From Chiloscyllium plagiosum (lineage: Eukaryota), in NCBI RefSeq assembly GCF_004010195.1, contig NC_057753.1:940330-1004329 (forward strand): a stretch of DNA of 64,000 nucleotides, written 5' to 3'. Below, one piece after another: positions 17,065 to 60,465 of this stretch. The translations under genes and the position numbers were made by a program. The notes beneath the pieces were generated by a model that did no database searches, was not told the origin of the DNA, and was given only the letters and a program-made list of their open reading frames with translations. Position 1 is the stretch's first letter. Every line of letters begins with the position of its first letter.

Positions 17065-17625
17065 TCAGTGATCATCGTCAACTGATGTGGTTTGAAATTG
17101 AGCAAACGTTGACTAATAACTCTCAATCAGCTTGTTTATTCGTTGCATCATTAAATCAAAGTCAAATTGCCAAACAATCAGTATTCTCTTTTATTCATTA
17201 CAAGTGTTGGCTTTCCCTTTATATCCAAGCCTGCGAAGTTTCCTGATGTCCTTCAATAAAATATATTTGTTTTTCTTAAGTCTTCAGAATCTCTCATATC
17301 ACACGATTAAAGTCGAGATCGTCAAACGTTTGAGGACCTCTATTTCTTTACTGCATTCAGTTAGTTTTCCCACTGCATTCTGTATTCTTTGACATTATGA
17401 TCTTTTGTTTTATTGCATCTCCTTTGCTATCTGCTGATTACCAGATTTGGTGGCCATCCCATTCTTTCTCGCGTTACTTAGCTGAGCAAACACCTCTGAA
17501 GCAAGGCTGTCACGTATTTACTGTTTTGCCTCCAAAAGATTCATTCCAATTCTCTCAGGTAATACATTTCTTTATTGCAATTCACTGATGCTAATCTTCG
17601 TCGGTTAAGTATCGTAAGGTTTGAG

Positions 17626-18600
17626 GGTAGAGCAGTGGATGTAGTATACATGGATTTTAGTAAGGCATTTGATAAGGTTCCCCATGGTAGGCTTATGCGG
17701 AAAGTCAGGAGGCATGGGATAGAGGGAAATTTGGCCAATTGGATAGAAAGCTGGCTAACCGGTCGAAGTCAGAGAGGGGTGGTAGATGGTAAATATTCAG
17801 CCTGGAGCCCAGTTACAAGTGGAGTTCCGCAGGGATCAGTTCTGGGTCCTCTGCTGTTCGTAACTTTTATTAATGACTTGGAAGAGGGAATCGAAGGGTG
17901 GGTGTAAATTTGCAGATGATACGAAGATAGGAGGAGTTGTGGACAGTGAGGAGGGCTGTTGTCGGCTGCAGAGGGACTTAGATATGATGCAGAGCTGGGC
18001 TGAGGAGCGGCAGATGGAGTTCAACCCTGNNNNNNNNNNNNNNNNNNNNNNNNNNNNNNNNNNNNNNNNNNNNNNNNNNNNNNNNNNNNNNNNNNNNNNN
18101 NNNNNNNNNNNNNNNNNNNNNNNNNNNNNNNNNNNNNNNNNNNNNNNNNNNNNNNNNNNNNNNNNNNNNNNNNNNNNNNNNGAGAGGAAGTCGTACGAGG
18201 CTAGGTTGAGAGTTCTCGGCCTTTTCTCGTTGGAACGGCGAAGGATGAGGGGTGACTTGATAGAGGTTTATAAGATGATCAGAGGAATAGGTAGAGTAGA
18301 CAGTCAGAAACTTTTTCCCCGGGCACAACCGAGTGTTACAAGGGGACATAAATTTACGGTGAAGGGTGGAAGGTATAGGGGAGATGTCAGGGGTGGGTTC
18401 TTTACCCAGAGAGTGGTGGGGGCATGGAATGCGCTGCCTGTGGGAGTGGTAGAGTCAGAATCATTGCTGACCTTTAAGCGGCAATTGAATAGGTTCATGG
18501 ATGGGTGTTTAAGCTAGGACAAATGTTCGGCACAACATCGTTCGGCACAACACCTGTTCTGTGCTGTATTGTTCTATGTTCTATGTTCTCTATGTTCTAT
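17626..18600 (+). mobile_element. Young 5'-truncated CR1 LINE (RT) with (TTCTATG)n tail, spans assembly gap
   Basis: [40 protein letters not shown]; tail repeat 18572-18600; GTTTGAG at both flanks (17619-17625, 18601-18607). Confidence 0.95.
18030..18181. other. Assembly gap (152 N)
   Basis: Run of N. Confidence 1.
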
Positions 18601-29257: not shown

Positions 29258-30684
29258 ATAGAGTCATAGTGTCATAGAGATGTACATCATGGAAACAGAT
29301 CCTTCAGTCCAACCCATCCATGCCGACCAAATATCCCAACCCAATCTTGTCCCACCTACCAGCACTTGGCCCATATTCCTCCAAACCCTTCCTCTTCATA
29401 TACCCATCCAAATTCCTTTAAATGTTGCAATTCTAGCACCCTCCACGGCATCGTCTGGCAGCTCATTCCATACACGTACCACCCTCTGTGTGAAAAACGT
29501 TCACCCTTAGGTCGCTTTCATATCTTTCCCCTCTCACCCTAAACCCATTCCCTCTTGTTCTGGACTCTCCCACCCCAGGGAAATGACTTTGTCTATTTAC
29601 CCTATCCAAGCATCTCATAATTTTGTAAACGTCAGTAAAGTCACCCCTCAGCCTCCGATGCTCCAGGGAAGCCAGCCCCAGCCTGTTCAGCCTCTTCCTA
29701 TAGCTCAAATCCTCCAACCCTTGCTACATCCTTGCAAATATTTTCCGAACTCTTTCAAGTTTCACAACATCTTTCCGATAGGAAGGAGACCAGAATTACA
29801 CACAATATTCCAATAGTGGCCAAACCAATGACTTGTACAGGCGCAACATGACCTCCCACTCCTGTACTCAATACTTTGACCAATAAAAGAATGCATACCA
29901 AACACCGCCTTCACTATCTTATCGAACTGCGACTCCATTTTGAAGTAGCTCCGAAACTGCACTCTAAGGTTTCTTTGTTCAGCAACACTCTCTAGGACCT
30001 TAATTTAAGTATATAAGTTCTGCTAAGATTTGCTTTCCCAAAATGCAGCACCTCGCATGTATCCGTATTTAACTCCGTCTGCCAGTTCTCAGCCCATTGG
30101 CCCAACTGTTCAAGGTCCTGTTGTAATCTGAGGTAACCTTCTTCCCTGTCCATTACACCTCCAATTTTGGTGTCATCTGCAAACTTACCTACTGCACCTC
30201 TTATGCTCGCATCCAAATCATTTGTGAAAATGTCAAAAAGTAGAAGGCCCAGCACCGATCCTTGTGGCACTCCACTGGTCACAGGCCTCCTGTCTGAAAA
30301 ACAACCCTCCACCACCACCCTCTGTTTTCTGCCTTTGAGCCAGTTCTGTATCCAAATGGCTAGTTTTCCATGTAGTCCATGACATCTAACCTTGATAACC
30401 AGTCTCCCATGGGGAAACTTGCCAAACGCCTTACTGAAGTCCATAGAGATCACATTTACCGTTCTGCCCTTATCAATACTCTTTCTTACTTCAAAATATT
30501 CAATCAAGTTTGTTGGACATGATTCCCCACGCACAAAGCCATGCTGATTATCCATAATCAGTCCTTGACTTTCCAAATACATGTCCCTCAGGATTCCCTC
30601 CAACAACTTGCCCACCACCGACATCAGGCTCACTGGTCTATAATTCCCTGGCTTGGCCTTACTATCCTTCTTAAACAGTGCATT
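29258..30684 (-). mobile_element. CR1 LINE, 5'-truncated, RT domain largely open (231 aa)
   Basis: [46 protein letters not shown]; tail repeat (CATAGAGT) near 29258-29280. Confidence 0.96.
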
Positions 30685-30734
30685 CACAGTATTGGAAAAT
30701 AACCTGCAAAATGTGTCAATATTAAATCATTAGA

Positions 30735-38370: not shown

Positions 38371-39630
38371 GGAAATGATTTCACTGCGTCACAACACTGT
38401 TTACGAGGGTGTGCCTTTTGCCCCTACGGCGGAGTTTACATTTAAACGTGTGTGCACGGCTCCTGTTTCCAGATTCTGCAACCTCTCGAAGTTCTCTTTC
38501 TCGATGGAAACGTTTTCCACCTGTTCATAATTCAAACGTGTTTTATGTGGTCAATAATTGCAATTCTTTGAACAAAGAAAGCTCAATCTTCGTGTATTCC
38601 ACAAACCAATATTTCCACATGTCAGTCAACTTTCGAGGGTATCTCTGGTGCAAGTTTTGAAATCACAGCATGCAAACTCTTGGCTGGAGTCGATCGCTGA
38701 ATTCTAATGTAATGTTGTGATTTATTATTTTCAGCATTTTGTACTGATTTAATTAACACGAAGTGGAATTTTATTTGACTATTTGTAGATTCTGACCCAA
38801 TGCACAAAAAGAAGCCTTCCCCAATGGAATAAAGCACTACTGCCAATTCAAAGCATGTTGAATCCTCTTTTGATTAAAAAGCTACAAAAAAGCTTTTTTT
38901 TATAATTCACAGTGACTTCCATCTTCTACTTTTAAACTAAATCACGCCAGTCTACCAGTTTCTCTTTGATTTTCGAAATTGTTAGCCATAATTCGTAACT
39001 GATTAGAACATTCAAATTTCAGCAGCACTGTCTCTAGGGTTATACCCAGGTGGTGATGTCAATGTGACTGGAGGTTTCCCCAGAAAAACAGTTCATTTGT
39101 GAAGCTTCTATGTATTTTTATTTGGGCTGAATATCGCCTTTTTTTGTCTTTTCTCTTTTCTGAACTCTTACATTGACTTCACTGTCCAGTTTCGAATTTT
39201 GCCTTCTGGAAAATCTACACTTACATTCATTTCTATTTATTAGTCAAAGACATTCAAAGTTCAATACACATTTCATCAGATATTTTTAAGGAACGAAACA
39301 CAACAAATAAAGCAGATGTTTCAATGTTATGGTTCTGGCGAGCATGGCATGTATACGTATGGCTACGTGGCCACACAATTGTCAGATTTCACCGTATGTG
39401 GGCTTTCAGTCTTAATTAATTAAGTGTGCCACTTTGTTCAGGAATTCGCTGTTAGAACTTGAGAGGTTTTCCCAGAAATGAAATGAAAATGTCACCAAGT
39501 TAAAACTCAAGGAAATTAAGCACATGCTGCTAATCTCTCCATTCTAAATTGACGCAGATTTCCATGATGTGAATATGGTTATTCGGCGCAAAGCTCAGCC
39601 CATCACAATCCGTGAGTTTGAATAATCGTG

Positions 39631-39754
39631 ATTGGTCTTTCGTTCCACACCATGCAAATAAACACAATCTCACGAGGTTTATAAAGTCGGTGCTCCGATA
39701 CACACTGCTTCACAGAACAGGTGGTATTGAAATCCAGCCTTGGCTGCATATAAA
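39631..39754 (+). promoter_or_regulatory. Putative IgNAR V promoter: ATTGG (reverse CCAAT) 39631-39635, octamer ATGCAAAT 39652-39659, TATAAA 39680-39685 and 39749-39754
   Basis: Exact motifs read from sequence. The octamer lies 20 bp upstream of a TATAAA and ~120 bp upstream of the leader ATG, the classical Ig VH promoter arrangement. Confidence 0.7.
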
Positions 39755-39778
39755 GTTCTGTCTGTTGGTGCATAAACA

Positions 39779-39821
39779 ATGAATAATTTCTTGTTTTCGT
39801 GCCTTTTAGCCTGGTTACCAA
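39779..39821 (+). CDS. IgNAR: IgNAR leader (signal peptide) exon, [14 protein letters not shown](N)
   Basis: ATG at 39779, 14 codons plus 1 nt, then donor GTAAGT at 39822. Resembles the IgNAR leader MNIFLLSVLLALLPNVFT and splices in frame to the V exon (A+AT=Asn). Confidence 0.93.
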
Positions 39822-39948
39822 GTAAGTACTGTTTCTCATAGATACTACTCCTATAAAGACCGTGTTTATATTATTGAAATGTCGTTCTCTGAAACTCTCC
39901 TTTTGATAGATAAATGGCATGTATTAAATATATTTTTTCTTCATCCAG

Positions 39949-40223
39949 ATGTCTTTACTGGTTGGGTGGACCAAACACCGAAAACGATAATAAGGGGGGC
40001 AACCGAATCACTGACCATCAACTGCGTCCTAAGAGATCCGAGCTATGCATTTTATAGCACGTACTGGTATCTAACAAAATTGGGCGCAACAAACAAGGAG
40101 AGCATGTCGATTGGCGGTCGGTACGCTGAAACAGTGAACAAGGGTTCAAATTCCTTTTCACTGCGAATTACTGATCTCAGAGTTGAAGACAGTGGCACTT
40201 ATCAGTGTGGAGCATGTTTTGAT
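39949..40223 (+). CDS. IgNAR: VNAR variable exon (germline V segment): (N)[91 protein letters not shown]
   Basis: Acceptor ttcatccAG at 39947-39948 and open frame (ORF 39879..40355). Canonical VNAR Cys22, Trp36, Cys83, no CDR2, GGRY and DSGTYxC motifs. Ends at an RSS heptamer. Confidence 0.97.
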
Positions 40224-40261
40224 CACAGTGATCAACCTCGATCTTCCACCATTCAAAAACA
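40224..40261 (+). other. V 3' recombination signal sequence, 22-bp spacer
   Basis: Perfect heptamer CACAGTG 40224-40230, 22-nt spacer, nonamer TCAAAAACA 40253-40261 (7/9 to ACAAAAACC). Confidence 0.9.
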
Positions 40262-40461
40262 CCATCAAATCTTCTGTGAAGTAAATTGGATTTGGTTTGC
40301 CGTTTCAACACTCAAAGTTCATTTTGAGGTCACCATTTATGATATGGAATGCTAGGAGGCAGGTTCTAAATGATTGTTATCAATATTCAGCAGAGAAATT
40401 TAGAGAAAGTGCACTTGTATATTCAGTGCTGTTACATAACTTAGAGTTACGAGCGAGCATT

Positions 40462-40552
40462 TATTTTTGCACTGGGATGTATCACTGTGAGAGCGGCTAT
40501 GTAACATGCAATACCACATTGAATAATCAGTGATTACAGGAATGCAGAAATG
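40462..40552 (+). other. D segment (coding 40490-40514, AGAGCGGCTATGTAACATGCAATAC) flanked by 5' 12-RSS and 3' 22-RSS
   Basis: 5' side: TATTTTTGC (40462-40470), 12 nt, CACTGTG (40483-40489). 3' side: CACATTG (40515-40521), 22 nt, GCAGAAATG (40544-40552, weaker nonamer, 5/9). Confidence 0.82.
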
Positions 40553-40866
40553 TCTTCCCACATCTGAATCCACTCTCCATGTGAAGTATTACTTGCATGC
40601 TTTAATACCTCATGCTTAAAGGTTTCTTGCAACTGTTAGGGCCTAGAAACTCCGATACACAGATTTTCATACTTTTTTCATTGATTATTACGTGAATGTT
40701 AACATCATAGCCACACACCAATATCAATAAGTATTTGACAAGTGGTTGAGAATTATAAACGTTGACTGGGAAAAAAATATAAAGGGAATGACTTGCATCA
40801 TACTTGATATCGATCAATCAATATCCTGGAACTTTTGAAAGGTTTCGGTGATATTTACAACAAGTG

Positions 40867-40894
40867 ATTTATTGTGCTGATGTGAAACAATGTG
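40867..40894 (-). other. 12-bp-spacer RSS in front of the J (D-J) segment
   Basis: On the + strand: ATTTATTGT (40867-40875, 6/9 to GGTTTTTGT), 12 nt GCTGATGTGAAA, CAATGTG (40888-40894). Confidence 0.7.
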
Positions 40895-40941
40895 TACATG
40901 GAGTGAAGGAAGCGGCACCATTCTGACTGTGAAACCTGATG
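40895..40941 (+). CDS. IgNAR: J segment (probably germline-joined D-J): TWSEGSGTILTVKPD(G)
   Basis: GAA GGA AGC GGC ACC ATT CTG ACT GTG AAA CCT matches the IgNAR FR4 EGxGTILTVKP. Donor GTAAGT at 40942, phase 1. Confidence 0.92.
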
Positions 40942-42949
40942 GTAAGTGCCCCTCTTTCTACTTATCGCTATGAGTATGCTGAGAAGTTATAAAGAATGAT
41001 TTCTAAAAGAGGTAGAACTGTCCAACTTGAGATGCAAAACATTTTGTCATGAACAATTTGTGCGTGCTGTAGTTGATGTGTCTTAGATTTCAAACACCTT
41101 TGCAGATTTTGTTTGAGTAAGTTTATGTAATTATATAAATATAAACGTGTAATATAGCTGGGAACAAGCCAATATTTAAATATTTAACATGCTTGGCACA
41201 GACAACATAAGATGCGTATTTGAGTAGATGATGGAATCAGGCGGTTAACAAAGGAAACTGCCCAGGATGGGAGGCTGTTGAAAGACATATTTGTGTGACA
41301 TAAATATACAAGATTTCCAATCGGAACAATTAATACAAGTTTGAATTGAGGAAAGCTTTCATCTAACCTTATTGTTTTTGGATTGTATCCAAAATTAATA
41401 TGTTTCAAAAGACAAGCCTTATTATGTAAAATAATATCGATTACTTTAGCATTATGACAAAAGCAGCAAGTAGGACGTCCGCTTTTGAAACTTGAAAAAC
41501 AGTAGCTCGCTAAATATGGGCTTCATACTAATGGTTGCTAGGAGTTGAAGTTCATGTGTTCCAGTTGCACAAAATGTAGATTTGTTGTGCGCTGATTACA
41601 ATAGGGTCCAATTTCAGATAATCAGCAGAGTGTAATTTTACTGCAATTCAGCATGAAATCAGATTGCTGGAAATCTGCTCTCCTCGATACATGACCATGT
41701 GATTTGAAGTTTGTTGTGTTTAAGATTGTATCGAATATTCGAGAACTTTGAAATCATTGTATTTGTAGTGTGAACTGTTAGTTTGAATTTAAAATGGAAA
41801 CCGTGGCGCCCATCGATTCAATGTTTACTGCTAGAGTAGAATAGTTTAGTCTTTGACTTACTGATTACACTCATTGTTATCTGATTGAATTATTTTAAAC
41901 ACATCATGGTACCTGTCTACTTAGAATCGTTTGCCTTCATACCAAACAGAGTTGATGTGTACACGATGGCATTGTTTTTGTAATGCAGTCAACTTGCTGT
42001 CATATGCTTGGACAGGTTAGTATTAGTGCAGGCAATCTGAGTGGAAACCCCCATAAGTGGTTAGTAATTGACAACACTTAATTTAAAAACAGGTCAGAAG
42101 CCAGGCTTCACGTTAGGAAGGGGCAACGCTGACAAAGATTGTGATTTCAAAAAACTCGTTTGACTGTAAGCTGGTGCCATGTTACTTCTAACATTGCCCA
42201 TTCAGTCCAACGTCATCACCTTCACAACGACAAAACAAACCCTGGCTTCGCATTGGTAGCAATCCCACAGGAAACATTCACTCCACTAAGCAAAAACTTC
42301 TACAATTTACGCATTCGCAGAGTAATGTAAAAACGTAGGAAACGATTTTAGTACATCTAGAGGATGCATAGAATAGTGTGCCCTGACACAAACACTTTCA
42401 CTTGTAATTGAAAAGTAAATAGAACCTCCACTGCAATGTTGACAGTGTATTGGTAGATTTCCAGAAAATAGCTCTATCTCTTTGAATGAGATGGAATTGG
42501 GAGCAGTTACATCATGGAAATATAATTAATTTACTCGCTGTCTTTCATGCTCATGGAAAGCTAATTTTTATGCCTTGTCATGTTTCACTATAATGGTTAA
42601 AAACTTCCCAAATATTAATATTTCCTTTTCTGATTTACAATCACAATACAATTCATTTTGACTTATACGTTAATAGGACTACATTTACAAATACAGAGAT
42701 CACTTGTTCTACTTCTGAAACCTCTCCTCAGCCAGATCCATTAGACTCTATTTTTTGCCTGCAAAAGGCTTTGACATATGGCAAAAACAGTCGTTAAAAT
42801 TTGACCTAAAATCAAATCTGAATGGGATGATCTAAGCAAATAACGGCTTTCCACCTTCACATAAGGGAAAGTATGTTGGAGGAAATCAGATCAGCTGGAC
42901 AGATTAGCAAATGACATGATCGTGACGATTAACATTCTATATTAAGCAT

Positions 42950-51879: not shown

Positions 51880-52200
51880 GCGCGCAGCCTTCTCCACCAG
51901 TCATCAGTCTACTCTACTCTGCAACTGAAGAACAGAGAGTAAACGGATTTCTGCAGCTGGTTTGTGTAATCAGCGGATATTATCCCGAAACAATTGCAGT
52001 GACCTGGCAGAAGAATGGAAATGCTATAAATTCTGGCTTCACAACCACGCCTCCAATGACAACAACGACCGCTGATTTTAGCTCTACAAGTTGGCTTAAA
52101 GTGCCCATGCAGGAATGGAGCAGTGGTTCTATATACAGTTGTCACGTTTCCCATTCTGAAACCAACAGTAACCTCAGAAAAGAAATTAGTTCAGCATCGG
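51880..52200 (+). CDS. IgNAR: IgNAR C1 exon (intact): (G)AQPSPPVISLLYSATEEQRVNGFLQLVCVISGYYPETIAVTWQKNG...EWSSGSIYSCHVSHSETNSNLRKEISSAS
   Basis: Acceptor tttcAG 51878-51879, donor GTAAGA 52201, 321 nt, no stop. Ig C1-set Cys/Trp/Cys present, recognisably IgNAR C1. Confidence 0.96.
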
Positions 52201-53670: not shown

Positions 53671-53766
53671 TTCTATTAGCTTACACACGTTATGATGCAA
53701 TGTAACCCGGTTACATTGCTGTTGGAACATGGGCCAGAAACTGTATCTCTGACTTCACAGCGACAG

Positions 53767-54059
53767 AGATTGCGGTATTACTAAGAGATCCATTGGTTGA
53801 AGAAACCTGGATCAATAAAAGTGCCACTCTGATTTGCGAAGTGCATTCTACAGTTTCCACTGCGGTGGTAATCTCTTGGATGGTGAATGAAAAGGTGCGG
53901 AATGAAGGCGTTCAAACTGAAACAGCAAATGAAAACTAATATCTGACCATCAGCCGCTTGACCAGCAGCGTGGAAGAGTGGCAGGGTGGGGTAGAGTACA
54001 CATGCTCCGCAAAGCATGATCAATCAGCGATTGCAGTATCAAAACAGGAATGGCAAGAG
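53767..54059 (+). pseudogene. Degenerate IgNAR C2 exon: EIAVLLRDPLVEETWINKSATLICEVHSTVSTAVVISWMVNEKVRNEGVQTETANEN*YLTISRLTSSVEEWQGGVEYTCSAKHDQS...
   Basis: Clear C2 homology with an in-frame TAA at 53937-53939 where NQYLTISR is expected. Small deletion just before it and apparent frameshift near the 3' end. Alternative in-frame acceptor gives start 53761; possible donors at 54060 or 54064. Confidence 0.92.
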
Positions 54060-54139
54060 GTTGGTAACAAAAAATATATATTTGTATATGTCACTTTATT
54101 AACGAGCAAAGATTAAAATTGTCTGTAATTCTATGACAG

Positions 54140-54368
54140 TCGAAGCAATAAAGCAACAAAATACACGTTTTCTGGGAGAAAGACGGAACTTCTGTCAGCG
54201 CAATCATCATCAGTTTCCCCACTGCTTTGGAGCAGGACCTGACCTTAAGTGCATGGAGCCTCCTCGTTTTACCTGTAGTGGACTGGAAGAGCGGAGATAA
54301 ACACACCTGTACTGCCTCGCATCCACCTTCACATTCCATTGTAAAAAGGATCATCAGGTGCCCGAAAG
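54140..54368 (+). pseudogene. Degenerate IgNAR C3 exon: (V)EAIK-[deletion/frameshift]-NKIHVFWEKDGTSVSAIIISFPTALEQDLTLSAWSLLVLPVVDWKSGDKHTCTASHPPSHSIVKRIIRCPK
   Basis: Acceptor gacAG 54138-54139. Only 229 nt versus 321 for sibling exons; the N-terminal strands with the first Cys and FYP motif are missing and the frame is shifted. The donor position reads G|ATAAGG (54369) instead of G|GTAAGG. Confidence 0.92.
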
Positions 54369-55777
54369 ATAAGGACAATGTTTAAGCAAACATTTTCAAC
54401 ATTAACGCTTTGTGCTAAATATCAACAGAATATGAAATCTTAACCAAACATTCCAAGGTTCCAGCAAGACTTCTTGGAATGAAACAGCTTTAACACACCG
54501 CACACTGGCAATAGGTAGACAGGAGAAGCAATAATATACAACAAATGCGTGGATTTAATCAGTGCGAAAACTGCTGGTGTAAAGAATGGAGGGGCCCTCT
54601 TGTGGAGCATTGGTAGTGTCTGTACCCTGGACCAAGAGGCCCGCGTTTACTTTCCCCAATTCCAGAGTTGTGTATTGAGCAATCTGAACAATTTGACGAG
54701 AAAAAATAGGTTAAGAAAACTTTTATATTAAGAAAAGAGCTTCATTGCACGATTAACACTTGAAGGCGTGTTAACTTTAGACAAAAATGAATGGTGGTCA
54801 GAGGAAGATTGTGGCGACATGATTTTTGTGTCTTGTGTGCATCAGTCACTACTTCATGCTTCTCCTTTTGGTCTAAAAAGAGTGGTTCCTGAAAGTCAAC
54901 TAAAAGGTAAATAGAAATGAAACCATTTCTCCCTAAGTGGAACTAATGCACATGAATTGATTTGTACATTTCAATGATTCTCTTCTTCAGTTTCTTCCCT
55001 TGGACGTCGCATGAACAGACAAATAATTATTTTATTCACGAGAATAAGTCATGCAAATTACTGAACCGGGTTTAGTTCTCGCTGCCTGCTGAGCTCCTGG
55101 ATCTCACCAGATTGTGGTGTGGGCGGTATAAAACCCGTTCATGACCTTAAAGAAATGAGAAGCAATACATCAAGTTTGCAACACTGATCTCTGGTACACT
55201 GGTCTGTGAGCAAGGGAATAGATTAACGGCTGCGACAAACCTCTGGTCATTCACTTACCAATAGCAAACTACTGGAAGGCCATGCGTTGATTTAACTCTG
55301 CAGATCATTCTTTGAATATTACACTGGAGGAGACTTATATGAGTAGCATACAGTCACTTTGCTTTGTCAGCCATCTGAGGAGTCTTGCTAAAATAAATTT
55401 ACTTGCACTCCTGCAAATGGCAACGGCGAATGTGAGTGTTATACATATGCTATCTAAATTTTCTCTTGCTAATTCATGAAGACTGATCAGTCAAGTTAGC
55501 TTTCATACCAATACCGTTTCTTTATCAATATGAAATTCAATGTTCCTCTCCACAGTAATGGATGATATCCATGTGAAACTGTGAGAGATTTCACTTCAGA
55601 ACTTTGATGCAATGGTGTCCCTGTTAAAATCATCTCAGTGGTACACGGGAAATTCTGAAATTGCTTACTTTAAAATGTCATTGATAAACCTCCGATTTCT
55701 GTTTCAAACGCGAGGGCATGATTAATTTCATTTTGATTAGTTTTATTCCTCGCAATTCCGTTGTCACCCGCCCCCCG

Positions 55778-57605: not shown

Positions 57606-58952
57606 ACTTAATTTTATGACTGAAACGTTTTGACAAAGCAACTATCACCAAGACTCTGATGGAACAGATCTTGTAACGTAAAATATGACCGACGTATTTA
57701 GTGAAGATATAATTATATAATGCGACTGATCACAGGTTGCCAATCGACAAATTCATGTTAGTAGTCTGCTAGGTTTAATAGAGATTTAGTGACAGAGACT
57801 AACTCAGGACATCCAGAAGACACGGAAGTATTTAGACTTAAGAGTTTGGAATGCAAATCAATAGAAGAGTAGCATCTGCAATATTCTCCCGGGCAGATAA
57901 ACTGAGAGGCACTGGCAAAATTGAAGAACTGCACAAGCGTTACAGTGTGCATACAAAATAAAATTATGCCATGAGAACTGGACGGTAGACACGGAAAATC
58001 AGTCCTCCGAAGAGGTATTACAACTTTCAGAGATAACTGGTTCTTCGAATGTAGAAAAGGTACTAATTTTAAGCTAACAATACAATCAGAACACTTAGGA
58101 ACCTTGCTTTGATTTGTATTTTCCGGAATGCATAACGGAAATAAATGTTTTTGTATTAAGAGCGACCATTTTTCTTTAAGAAATCTAAAAGTAGGCTTTC
58201 TCCTGTTTTATGCATACGTTTAAGGTTATCACCTTTCTGAAAACTGTTAGGTTTGGCTGTTCCCAGTAGCAGAGTTGAGCTGTGAAAGATGCGTGCTCAC
58301 AATACTTTAGGTTTTCTCACTTCACACTCTTCAAAGAATAACTATTTGTTTTTTTTAAAAAAGTATTTTCAGAGCTCCATTGACTGGACCTGAATTATTA
58401 AGTAAATATCTTTCTTTTTTAAAATAAAAAGACTCTGCCGAGGAACTAGGACAGAAAAGTCACTTTAAATGACACAATCAATCAAAATGCAGGTTTATGC
58501 CAGCTGAATGTCTCCATTAGTTGATCGGATACAGTGCAAATAATTTTAACTTTTGAACATGGGATACTTACGATACGTTTTTGCTTGTTGGGTATTGGAT
58601 TCTTACAAATGCAGTCATTCAGCAGTAACTACCTTCTGGCATAAGTAACTGCAATAGGCGAAAGTGTGCAGCACTCGAACGGAGACAATTCAGCCTCAGT
58701 ATACGCAAAACAGATCAATTTCCAAATTGTGCAAGAATACATCATAAATATTAGTGAAGATGCATCCATAACATTCAGGGCGAATGCAACCTTCACGAAC
58801 AGGAGGGCACAGCATCTAATTAACTGAGCAGAATCTATCAGGGAAAACAGGTAACAGATCGCAGTAAATAACATTATTCCCCAACACTTGCAGTATTTTG
58901 GAATTGATTTCGATATTGCAGCCTTAAAACGTATATTCCCTTCCCTTTCCAG

Positions 58953-59273
58953 ATGATTGCCATCAGACAGACATTTCTGTTAATCTACTGAAACCTTCGT
59001 TTGAAGAGATTTGGACACAGAAAACAGCGACCATTGTTTGTGAAATCGTTTACAACAACTTTGGAAGCATCAACGTTTTCTGGCAAGTGAACGGGGCTGA
59101 GATAACTAAAGGAGTCGAAACAGAAAATCCTAATTGGAACGGAAGTAAATTCACAATTGTAAGCAAACTAAAAATCATGGCATCAGAGTGGGACAGCGGT
59201 GCCAAGTATGTTTGTCTGGTAGAAAACAGTGAATTATCAACTCCAGTGGAAGCCTCCATCAAGAAGACAATTG
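58953..59273 (+). CDS. IgNAR: IgNAR C4 exon (intact): (D)DCHQTDISVNLLKPSFEEIWTQKTATIVCEIVYNNFGSINVFWQVNG...EWDSGAKYVCLVENSELSTPVEASIKKTI
   Basis: Strong pyrimidine tract and AG 58951-58952, donor GTAAGT 59274, 321 nt, no stop. Retains the N-terminal extra Cys. Confidence 0.96.
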
Positions 59274-59532
59274 GTAAGTGGCGATAATACTGCAATAAGT
59301 ACAAATTAGAACCGACTTCCGAAATCTGACATGAAAAAGAAGTTTGTAGAAACTGAGCAGGACTGGCAGAATCTATGGAGAGAACAATAGGGTAAACCTT
59401 TCCAGTCCACTATGTCTCTTTCCAAAAATGGTAGTTTATGTTACTACGAGATAATCTTGACTTAAAAGTTAGTCCAATGTAAAAACATCCTGTCAAATCT
59501 TTAATGTGTTACATTAAATGGTCAGGAATCCG

Positions 59533-60082: not shown

Positions 60083-60465
60083 ACAGCGAAATGCATCCAC
60101 CTCAGGTTTATCTCCTGCATCCATCGACGGACGAGATTGACACTGAGGATTCAGCGACCCTGATGTGTGTAGCCACCAGCTTTTACCCAGCTGAGATCTA
60201 CATTGGCTGGATGGCCAATGACACCCTTTTGGATACCGGGTACCGGACGCATGTAGATAGTGAGAAGGGGAATGGTTCCAACTTCATGACCAGCAGGTTG
60301 ACAGTCACGGCGGCGGAATGGAACAGTGACACCACTTACACCTGCTTAGTGGGACACCCATCCCTCAGCCGGGAGTTAATCAGGAGTACAAATAAATCTC
60401 ACGGTAAACCGACATCAGTTAATGTATCAGTCGTACTGAGTGACATTGTTAAATCCTGCACATAA
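60083..60465 (+). CDS. IgNAR: IgNAR C5 exon plus secretory tailpiece: (D)SEMHPPQVYLLHPSTDEIDTEDSATLMCVATSFYPAEIYIGWMAND...TYTCLVGHPSLSRELIRSTNKSH-GKPTSVNVSVVLSDIVKSCT*
   Basis: Acceptor tttgcAG 60081-60082; C5 proper is 60083-60403 (321 nt). Internal donor G|GTAAAC at 60404 for the membrane form. Tailpiece has NVS sequon and penultimate Cys; stop TAA 60463-60465. Confidence 0.97.

Follow-up and report, generated by a model that had tools for sequence, protein, structure and literature searches.

An expressed IgNAR gene cluster whose joining elements are reduced in number and whose J segment may be an old germline D-J join

The plus strand of the analysed stretch, a 64,000-nt piece of genomic DNA that is referred to as the window below, carries a single immunoglobulin heavy-chain cluster of the IgNAR type, whose features are collected in Table 1. 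Its V-D-J part is compact, with 671 nt separating the end of V from the start of J, and the constant exons begin 11 kb downstream of it. Every one of the 15 database relatives of the V domain is a VNAR or IgNAR V sequence; they originate from wobbegong, bamboo sharks, dogfish and nurse shark and share 63-73% identity with it, the nearest being 71-73% identical. Among the constant exons, four match the C1-set model, C2 as two pieces whose scores of 22.1 and 19.5 bits compare with a cut-off of 21 bits. Searches with other parts of the cluster return little: the open frame that spans D gives three weak matches of 26-40% identity among protein representatives, a wider query that reads through the V end yields a single additional cDNA, and the peptide motifs of the V, D and J segments have no match in the literature searched. 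Many open frames resembling reverse transcriptase, which are LINE fragments, occupy the intron between J and C1 and the 39 kb that precede V (e.g. 17575-18517 and 29992-30687), and a run of N letters is found at 18030-18181.

Table 1. Elements of the IgNAR cluster, in coordinates of the window. RSS scores are given as matching consensus positions out of 16; fractions of 9 refer to the nonamer.
Feature	Position	Strand	Basis or score
Ig octamer ATGCAAAT	39652-39659	+	direct reading; putative promoter element, from its position upstream of the leader
TATAAAG (TATA box)	39680-39686	+	direct reading
Leader exon, donor GT at 39822	39779-39821	+	X18 contigs splice 39821 to the V exon start
IgNAR V exon, terminal YQCGACFD	39949-40223	+	Pfam V-set E 2.3e-10
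V RSS: CACAGTG (40224-40230), 22-nt spacer, nonamer TCAAAAACA (7/9)	40224-40261	+	14/16
D 5' RSS: nonamer 40462-40470 (6/9), 12-nt spacer, perfect heptamer CACTGTG 40483-40489	40462-40489	+	13/16
Sole free D, 25 nt	40490-40514	+	direct reading and transcript joints
D 3' RSS: CACATTG (40515-40521), 22-nt spacer, weak nonamer GCAGAAATG (5/9)	40515-40552	+	11/16
J 5' RSS: nonamer 40867-40875 (6/9), 12-nt spacer, heptamer CAATGTG 40888-40894	40867-40894	+	12/16
J (or D-J), 47 nt, TWSEGSGTILTVKPD; splice donor GT at 40942	40895-40941	+	direct reading
C1 exon, intact	51880-52200	+	C1-set E 1.6e-20; acceptor and donor read; its first letters adjoin J in transcripts
C2 exon, in-frame TAA at 53937-53939	53761-54063	+	exon reading, C1-set search
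C3 remnant, 3' half alone	54152-54382	+	about 90 nt separate the C2 donor and the remnant
C4 exon; start set by acceptor, end is the open-frame end	58952-59284	+	C1-set E 1.7e-13
C5 and secretory tail to the stop codon, start approximate, tail ...GKPTSVNVSVVLSDIVKSCT	60091-60465	+	C1-set E 1.9e-20

The joining elements were evaluated with an RSS scan that covered both strands of all 64 kb, in which CAC was required, 12 or more of the 16 consensus positions had to match and shuffled sequences served as control. At this threshold, the only two 12-spacer RSSs on either strand of the 64 kb are those 5' of D and 5' of J, against a shuffle mean of 1.1. The RSS at the 3' side of D, at 11/16, is at chance level by score alone, as the window contains 17 sites of this quality and shuffles average 7.35; it is taken as real because it lies 25 nt past a strong 12-RSS and because transcript joints leave D at 40511-40515. 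The layout proposed in the first-pass annotation, namely a V with a 22-spacer RSS, a D with a 12-spacer RSS in front and a 22-spacer RSS behind, and a J preceded by a 12-spacer RSS, all within about 670 bp, is thereby recovered, with each element at its claimed place by direct reading and RSS scan. Its description as an IgNAR cluster with a single free D is likewise upheld, since one RSS-flanked D is found and both V and C exons are of the IgNAR type. Additional D/RSS pairs in the V-J interval, which had been named as an observation that would speak against this description, are missing from 40150-41000, where the scan detects no further pair of CAC heptamer and nonamer. Finally, the claim that the 12/23 rule is obeyed and that two joins suffice agrees with the RSS spacers as read and with transcripts that contain two joins. 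Instead of the three D segments and four joins expected of an IgNAR cluster, this cluster has one RSS-flanked D and its transcripts display two joins; reviews allow for 'up to three' D segments in IgNAR clusters (PMC5192425, in the text available). The three frames of the 25-nt D read RAAM*HAI, ERLCNMQY and SGYVTCN, two of which encode a Cys, and the third is the one used in the dominant transcript.

The constant region is partly degraded. While C1, C4 and C5 with the secretory tail are intact, C2 contains a stop codon and C3 has lost its 5' half, so that a full-length chain is not possible from this cluster. In one 59-nt contig of sequencing run X18 (depth 2.5), the J end at 40941 is joined in frame to the C4 start at 58952, which would mean a V-C4 transcript devoid of C1-C3. 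The constant exons also bear on the identity of the locus, as a V, one D and a J with a 12-RSS form the pattern of NAR-TCR and TCR-delta, and a NAR-TCR cassette could be guessed from these elements. This candidate is contradicted by the IgNAR C exons C1-C5 with their secretory tail downstream of J, and by the splicing of J to IgNAR C1. Moreover, no leaderless supporting V was found in an open-frame scan of 36000-64000, which gave Ig C-type exons only.

A compact layout of this kind could also arise from an assembly artefact or from a somatically rearranged template, and public sequencing runs allow this to be assessed. At least half of the words sampled from the stretch are present in 12 of the 24 runs listed, which represent four studies and nine samples. 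Four of these runs (X5, X11, X17 and X18), all in the form of contigs, were compared with positions 39500-41500. Unrearranged contigs are found in X5, where they cover 39792-40482 with one mismatch and 40453-40942 without mismatch, and in X11, where one contig covers 40460-40923 without mismatch. The X5 contig 40453-40942 extends into the start of the cluster's own C1 and is a sterile (germline) transcript that was spliced from the J donor. As unrearranged contigs occur in runs of two studies, a somatically rearranged template is excluded, and the identical layout in runs of several samples and studies speaks against an artefact. The assembly therefore presents the germline state and not that of a rearranged B cell, as had been assumed from the letters alone, given contigs with zero or one mismatch in X5 and X11 and the presence of the words in four studies. 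Taken together, the three alternatives considered here, NAR-TCR, faulty assembly and a rearranged somatic template, are very improbable accounts of the locus.

Rearranged forms of the cluster are found among the same runs, of which X11 and X17 are very small, very deep and resemble VNAR amplicon libraries. Among the joints listed, transcripts leave V at 40216-40223, and V-to-D joints connect 40216, 40217 or 40223 with 40490 or 40494, with GA or CCT inserted. The D-to-J joints listed for X11 and X17 lead from 40511-40515 to 40896-40900 and carry the inserts C, CT, GT, CTC, TT, AT and GTAG; over all joints, J is entered at 40895-40900. A 355-nt contig of X18 comprises V with one mismatch, 2 nt, 18 nt of D and J in full length, and this V-D-J form, when rebuilt from slices of the window, is in frame and reads ...YQCGACDGYVTCNTWSEGSGTILTVKPD. 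The letters of the cluster's C1 follow directly after J in X5, X17 and X18, and the D and J pieces of the transcripts match the window with 0 mismatches. Hence, the cluster rearranges by two joins and is transcribed with its own C1. The dominant CDR3 form is C-G-A-C-D-G-Y-V-T-C-N-T-W-S-E-G-S-G, so that the short CDR3 ending in TWSEGSG that had been predicted from the germline letters is seen in transcripts whose reading frame was checked. Two Cys codons lie within this CDR3 at a distance of five residues, one from the V end (40215-40217) and one from D (40507-40509), and CDR1 is free of Cys; a disulfide within CDR3 between the V-end Cys and the D Cys is possible.

Some of the junctions recur. 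The same V-D junction (40217/40494 with the insert GA) is present in X11, X17 and X18, i.e. in three studies with two organism labels, and the insert-free D-J junction 40511/40895, which spans a shared TAC, is repeated in the same three runs. Two sources of such recurrence come into question: the junction is public, or it stems from a sister cluster nearly identical to this one whose D has already been joined. Under the second option, the transcripts with recurrent junctions would come from a sister cluster with D pre-joined to D-J, to which the repetition of the GA letters and of the TAC junction in three studies would correspond, and the cluster in the window would contribute little. Yet the many D-J joints with differing inserts, which are represented by deep contigs in X11 and X17, can only arise from a template whose D and J have not yet been joined, as is the case in this cluster, and D and J pieces identical to the window likewise argue against a source elsewhere. 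A sister-cluster origin is therefore considered improbable.

The remaining question concerns the J segment, whose coding part starts with TACATGGAG. The first-pass annotation proposed that the last D has been fused to J in the germline, based on the premise that J segments of the heavy-chain type carry a 22/23-RSS, and on the TWS that replaces the usual Tyr-rich 5' end of J. The premise on the RSS did not find support, as the literature searched contains no statement on the RSS type of a normal IgNAR J. The nurse shark NAR locus is reportedly arranged with 12/23 D segments and a 12-RSS on J. If a 12-RSS on J is normal for IgNAR, the RSS type is not diagnostic of a fusion, and this part of the original argument falls away. 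An ordinary IgNAR J would accordingly belong to a standard arrangement of V-23, D 12/23 and J-12, in which a D was lost or fused further upstream, or three D segments never existed, and in which the first nine nucleotides of J have simply diverged. Several points agree with this explanation: the J is 47 nt long, its WSEGSGTILTVKP aligns with YIEGGGTILTVKP of bamboo-shark VNARs, the nurse shark layout just described has the same RSS on J, and an asymmetric 12/22 D needs a downstream partner with a 12-RSS. In addition, NAR-TCR is regarded in the literature as the source of the IgNAR V(D)J region (PMC12227049, in the text available).

The comparison with transcripts of sister clusters provides evidence of a different kind. 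Here, 64 contigs (38 of X11 and 26 of X17) and three X5 reads align to J from 40904 on only, and the sister cDNA letters 5' of this position are unmatched and end in a Tyr-rich, J-like sequence (D-Y-Y-E or S-Y-I-E). The first nine nucleotides of J (40895-40903) thus differ from the sister J and the sequences are alike from 40904 onward, and because likeness is lost abruptly at this point and does not fade gradually, as simple divergence of an ordinary J would suggest, the break resembles a recombination joint. A second observation comes from one X5 contig, which matches the window up to 40896, including the 12-RSS and two coding letters; past this point it departs from the window with ten letters, followed by a perfect CACAGTG. 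In this sister contig, a D-like stretch of about 12 nt and a heptamer therefore follow the RSS region of J, and the continuation has the appearance of a short D and the heptamer on its 3' side, which again is not what an ordinary J would predict. The D-like letters were absent from the entire window when searched for. This contig is a single one from one run, with 30 loose letters and an overlap with the window that bin depths limit to about 57 nt at most. A longer overlap of 165 nt (40732-40896) was ruled out, as bin depths give no extra contig over 40773-40839, and the loose ends at 40732 and 40896 probably belong to different contigs. The first nine nucleotides of J match the D of this contig at six of nine positions, an agreement with a chance probability of ~0.01 that was spotted post hoc; the J flank does not duplicate that of the cluster's own D.

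The break at 40904, the D behind the same RSS region and the 6/9 match can be read as three independent hints of a fusion. At its ordinary length of 47 nt, the J would require trimming of about 11 nt in such an event, and the objection that its length and its alignment to bamboo-shark J ends leave no room for a D is weakened by the break and by the D behind the same RSS. The proposal of a last D fused to J is hence retained on these two grounds, and no longer on the type of RSS. We consider a germline D-J fusion plausible and unproven, with the balance tipped slightly in its favor, whereas an ordinary J is a tentative alternative that we judge to be clearly less than an even chance.

The annotation further suggested that another D is lost or hidden, either in the long V end (GACFD) or in the 25-nt D. 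The first of these options is disfavored, as in Chiloscyllium punctatum a germline V likewise ends in a five-residue tail before its heptamer, and the corresponding read-through protein of this species (P0004) can be aligned without gaps (62% identity) across the V end and the heptamer and for a further 130 nt. As to the second option, the 25-nt D is about double the length of the roughly 12-nt D of the X5 sister contig, and its length together with the Cys in two of its frames fits a fused pair, which proves nothing about its origin.

Overall, the locus is best explained as an expressed IgNAR cluster with reduced joining elements, in which J is most likely an old germline D-J join, an explanation to which we give somewhat more than even credence. 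Its joining set consists of a V with a 22-RSS, a free 25-nt D with 12- and 22-RSSs, and a J-type segment with a 12-RSS. From these, RAG builds the V region by joining V to D and D to J, two joins in all, and one direct V-to-J join would also be permitted under the 12/23 rule. The J-type segment itself most likely goes back to an ancient event in which RAG joined the last D with J in the germline, which would have left the 12-RSS of this D and a few of its letters (40895-40903) in front of the J body that begins at 40904. The product is a short-CDR3 VNAR with one extra Cys from the V end, another from D and none in CDR1. More speculatively, the cluster might represent a 'semi-invariant', innate-like lineage that RAG has reduced to V, a fused D and D-J, with a public short CDR3 whose two Cys could be bonded within the loop, and with a V-C1-C4-C5 or even V-C4-C5 chain that bypasses the defective C2 and C3 exons. 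This extended version is doubtful; if true, a semi-invariant, innate-like single-domain antibody would exist beside a diverse main cluster.

The cluster offers a concrete expressed case of how germline RAG activity can lower the number of joins in an IgNAR cluster from four to two, and the reduced cluster comes with read-level evidence of the resulting repertoire. It bears on the gain and loss of D segments during evolution, as well as on low-diversity, possibly early-life or innate-like, single-domain antibodies in sharks. For the construction of VNAR libraries, it supplies a V/J pair with a short two-Cys CDR3 outside the usual type I-IV scheme.

Partly germline-joined IgNAR clusters have already been described, and the present cluster is an addition to them and not a surprise. 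The closest counterpart may be sought in the type III IgNAR of the nurse shark, in which D1 and D2 are fused in the germline, a fusion that is attributed to germline RAG activity (PMC4622739 and PMC3149040, in the text available). Both systems are IgNAR clusters with fewer than four joins and a restricted CDR3; here, however, the suspected fusion connects the last D to J and one free D remains. The hallmark of type III, an extra Cys and a conserved Trp in CDR1, is absent, as CDR1 has neither a Cys nor an extra Trp, and the Cys pattern of the product, with two residues in CDR3 and none in CDR1, does not correspond to any of the types I-III. In the whitespotted bamboo shark, pre-joined D segments are reported for three of seven IgNAR clusters (IgNAR2, 5 and 6), and the clusters extend over some hundreds of kb, contain both 22-nt and 23-nt spacers and are in some cases incomplete (PMC8692893, in the text available). 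Pre-joined D segments and 22-nt spacers are thus shared with these clusters, and, as the available text of that study is without a per-cluster layout, the present arrangement may already be in print among its bamboo-shark layouts. Among other isotypes, partly joined clusters of the forms VD-J and VD-DJ are known for the IgM of horn shark and skate (PMC5192425 and PMC4279169, in the text available). These resemble the present case in having germline coding joints between neighboring segments of one cluster, D-J included, and differ from it in isotype and in that V is unjoined here and the locus still rearranges. Finally, D segments of TCR loci are asymmetric and permit direct V-J joining (PMC3457774, in the text available). 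The order V-23, D 12/23 and J-12 of NAR-TCR and TCR delta is matched by the elements described here, yet the constant region is that of IgNAR in place of a supporting V-delta plus C-delta, with J spliced to C1 and, in one contig, to C4.
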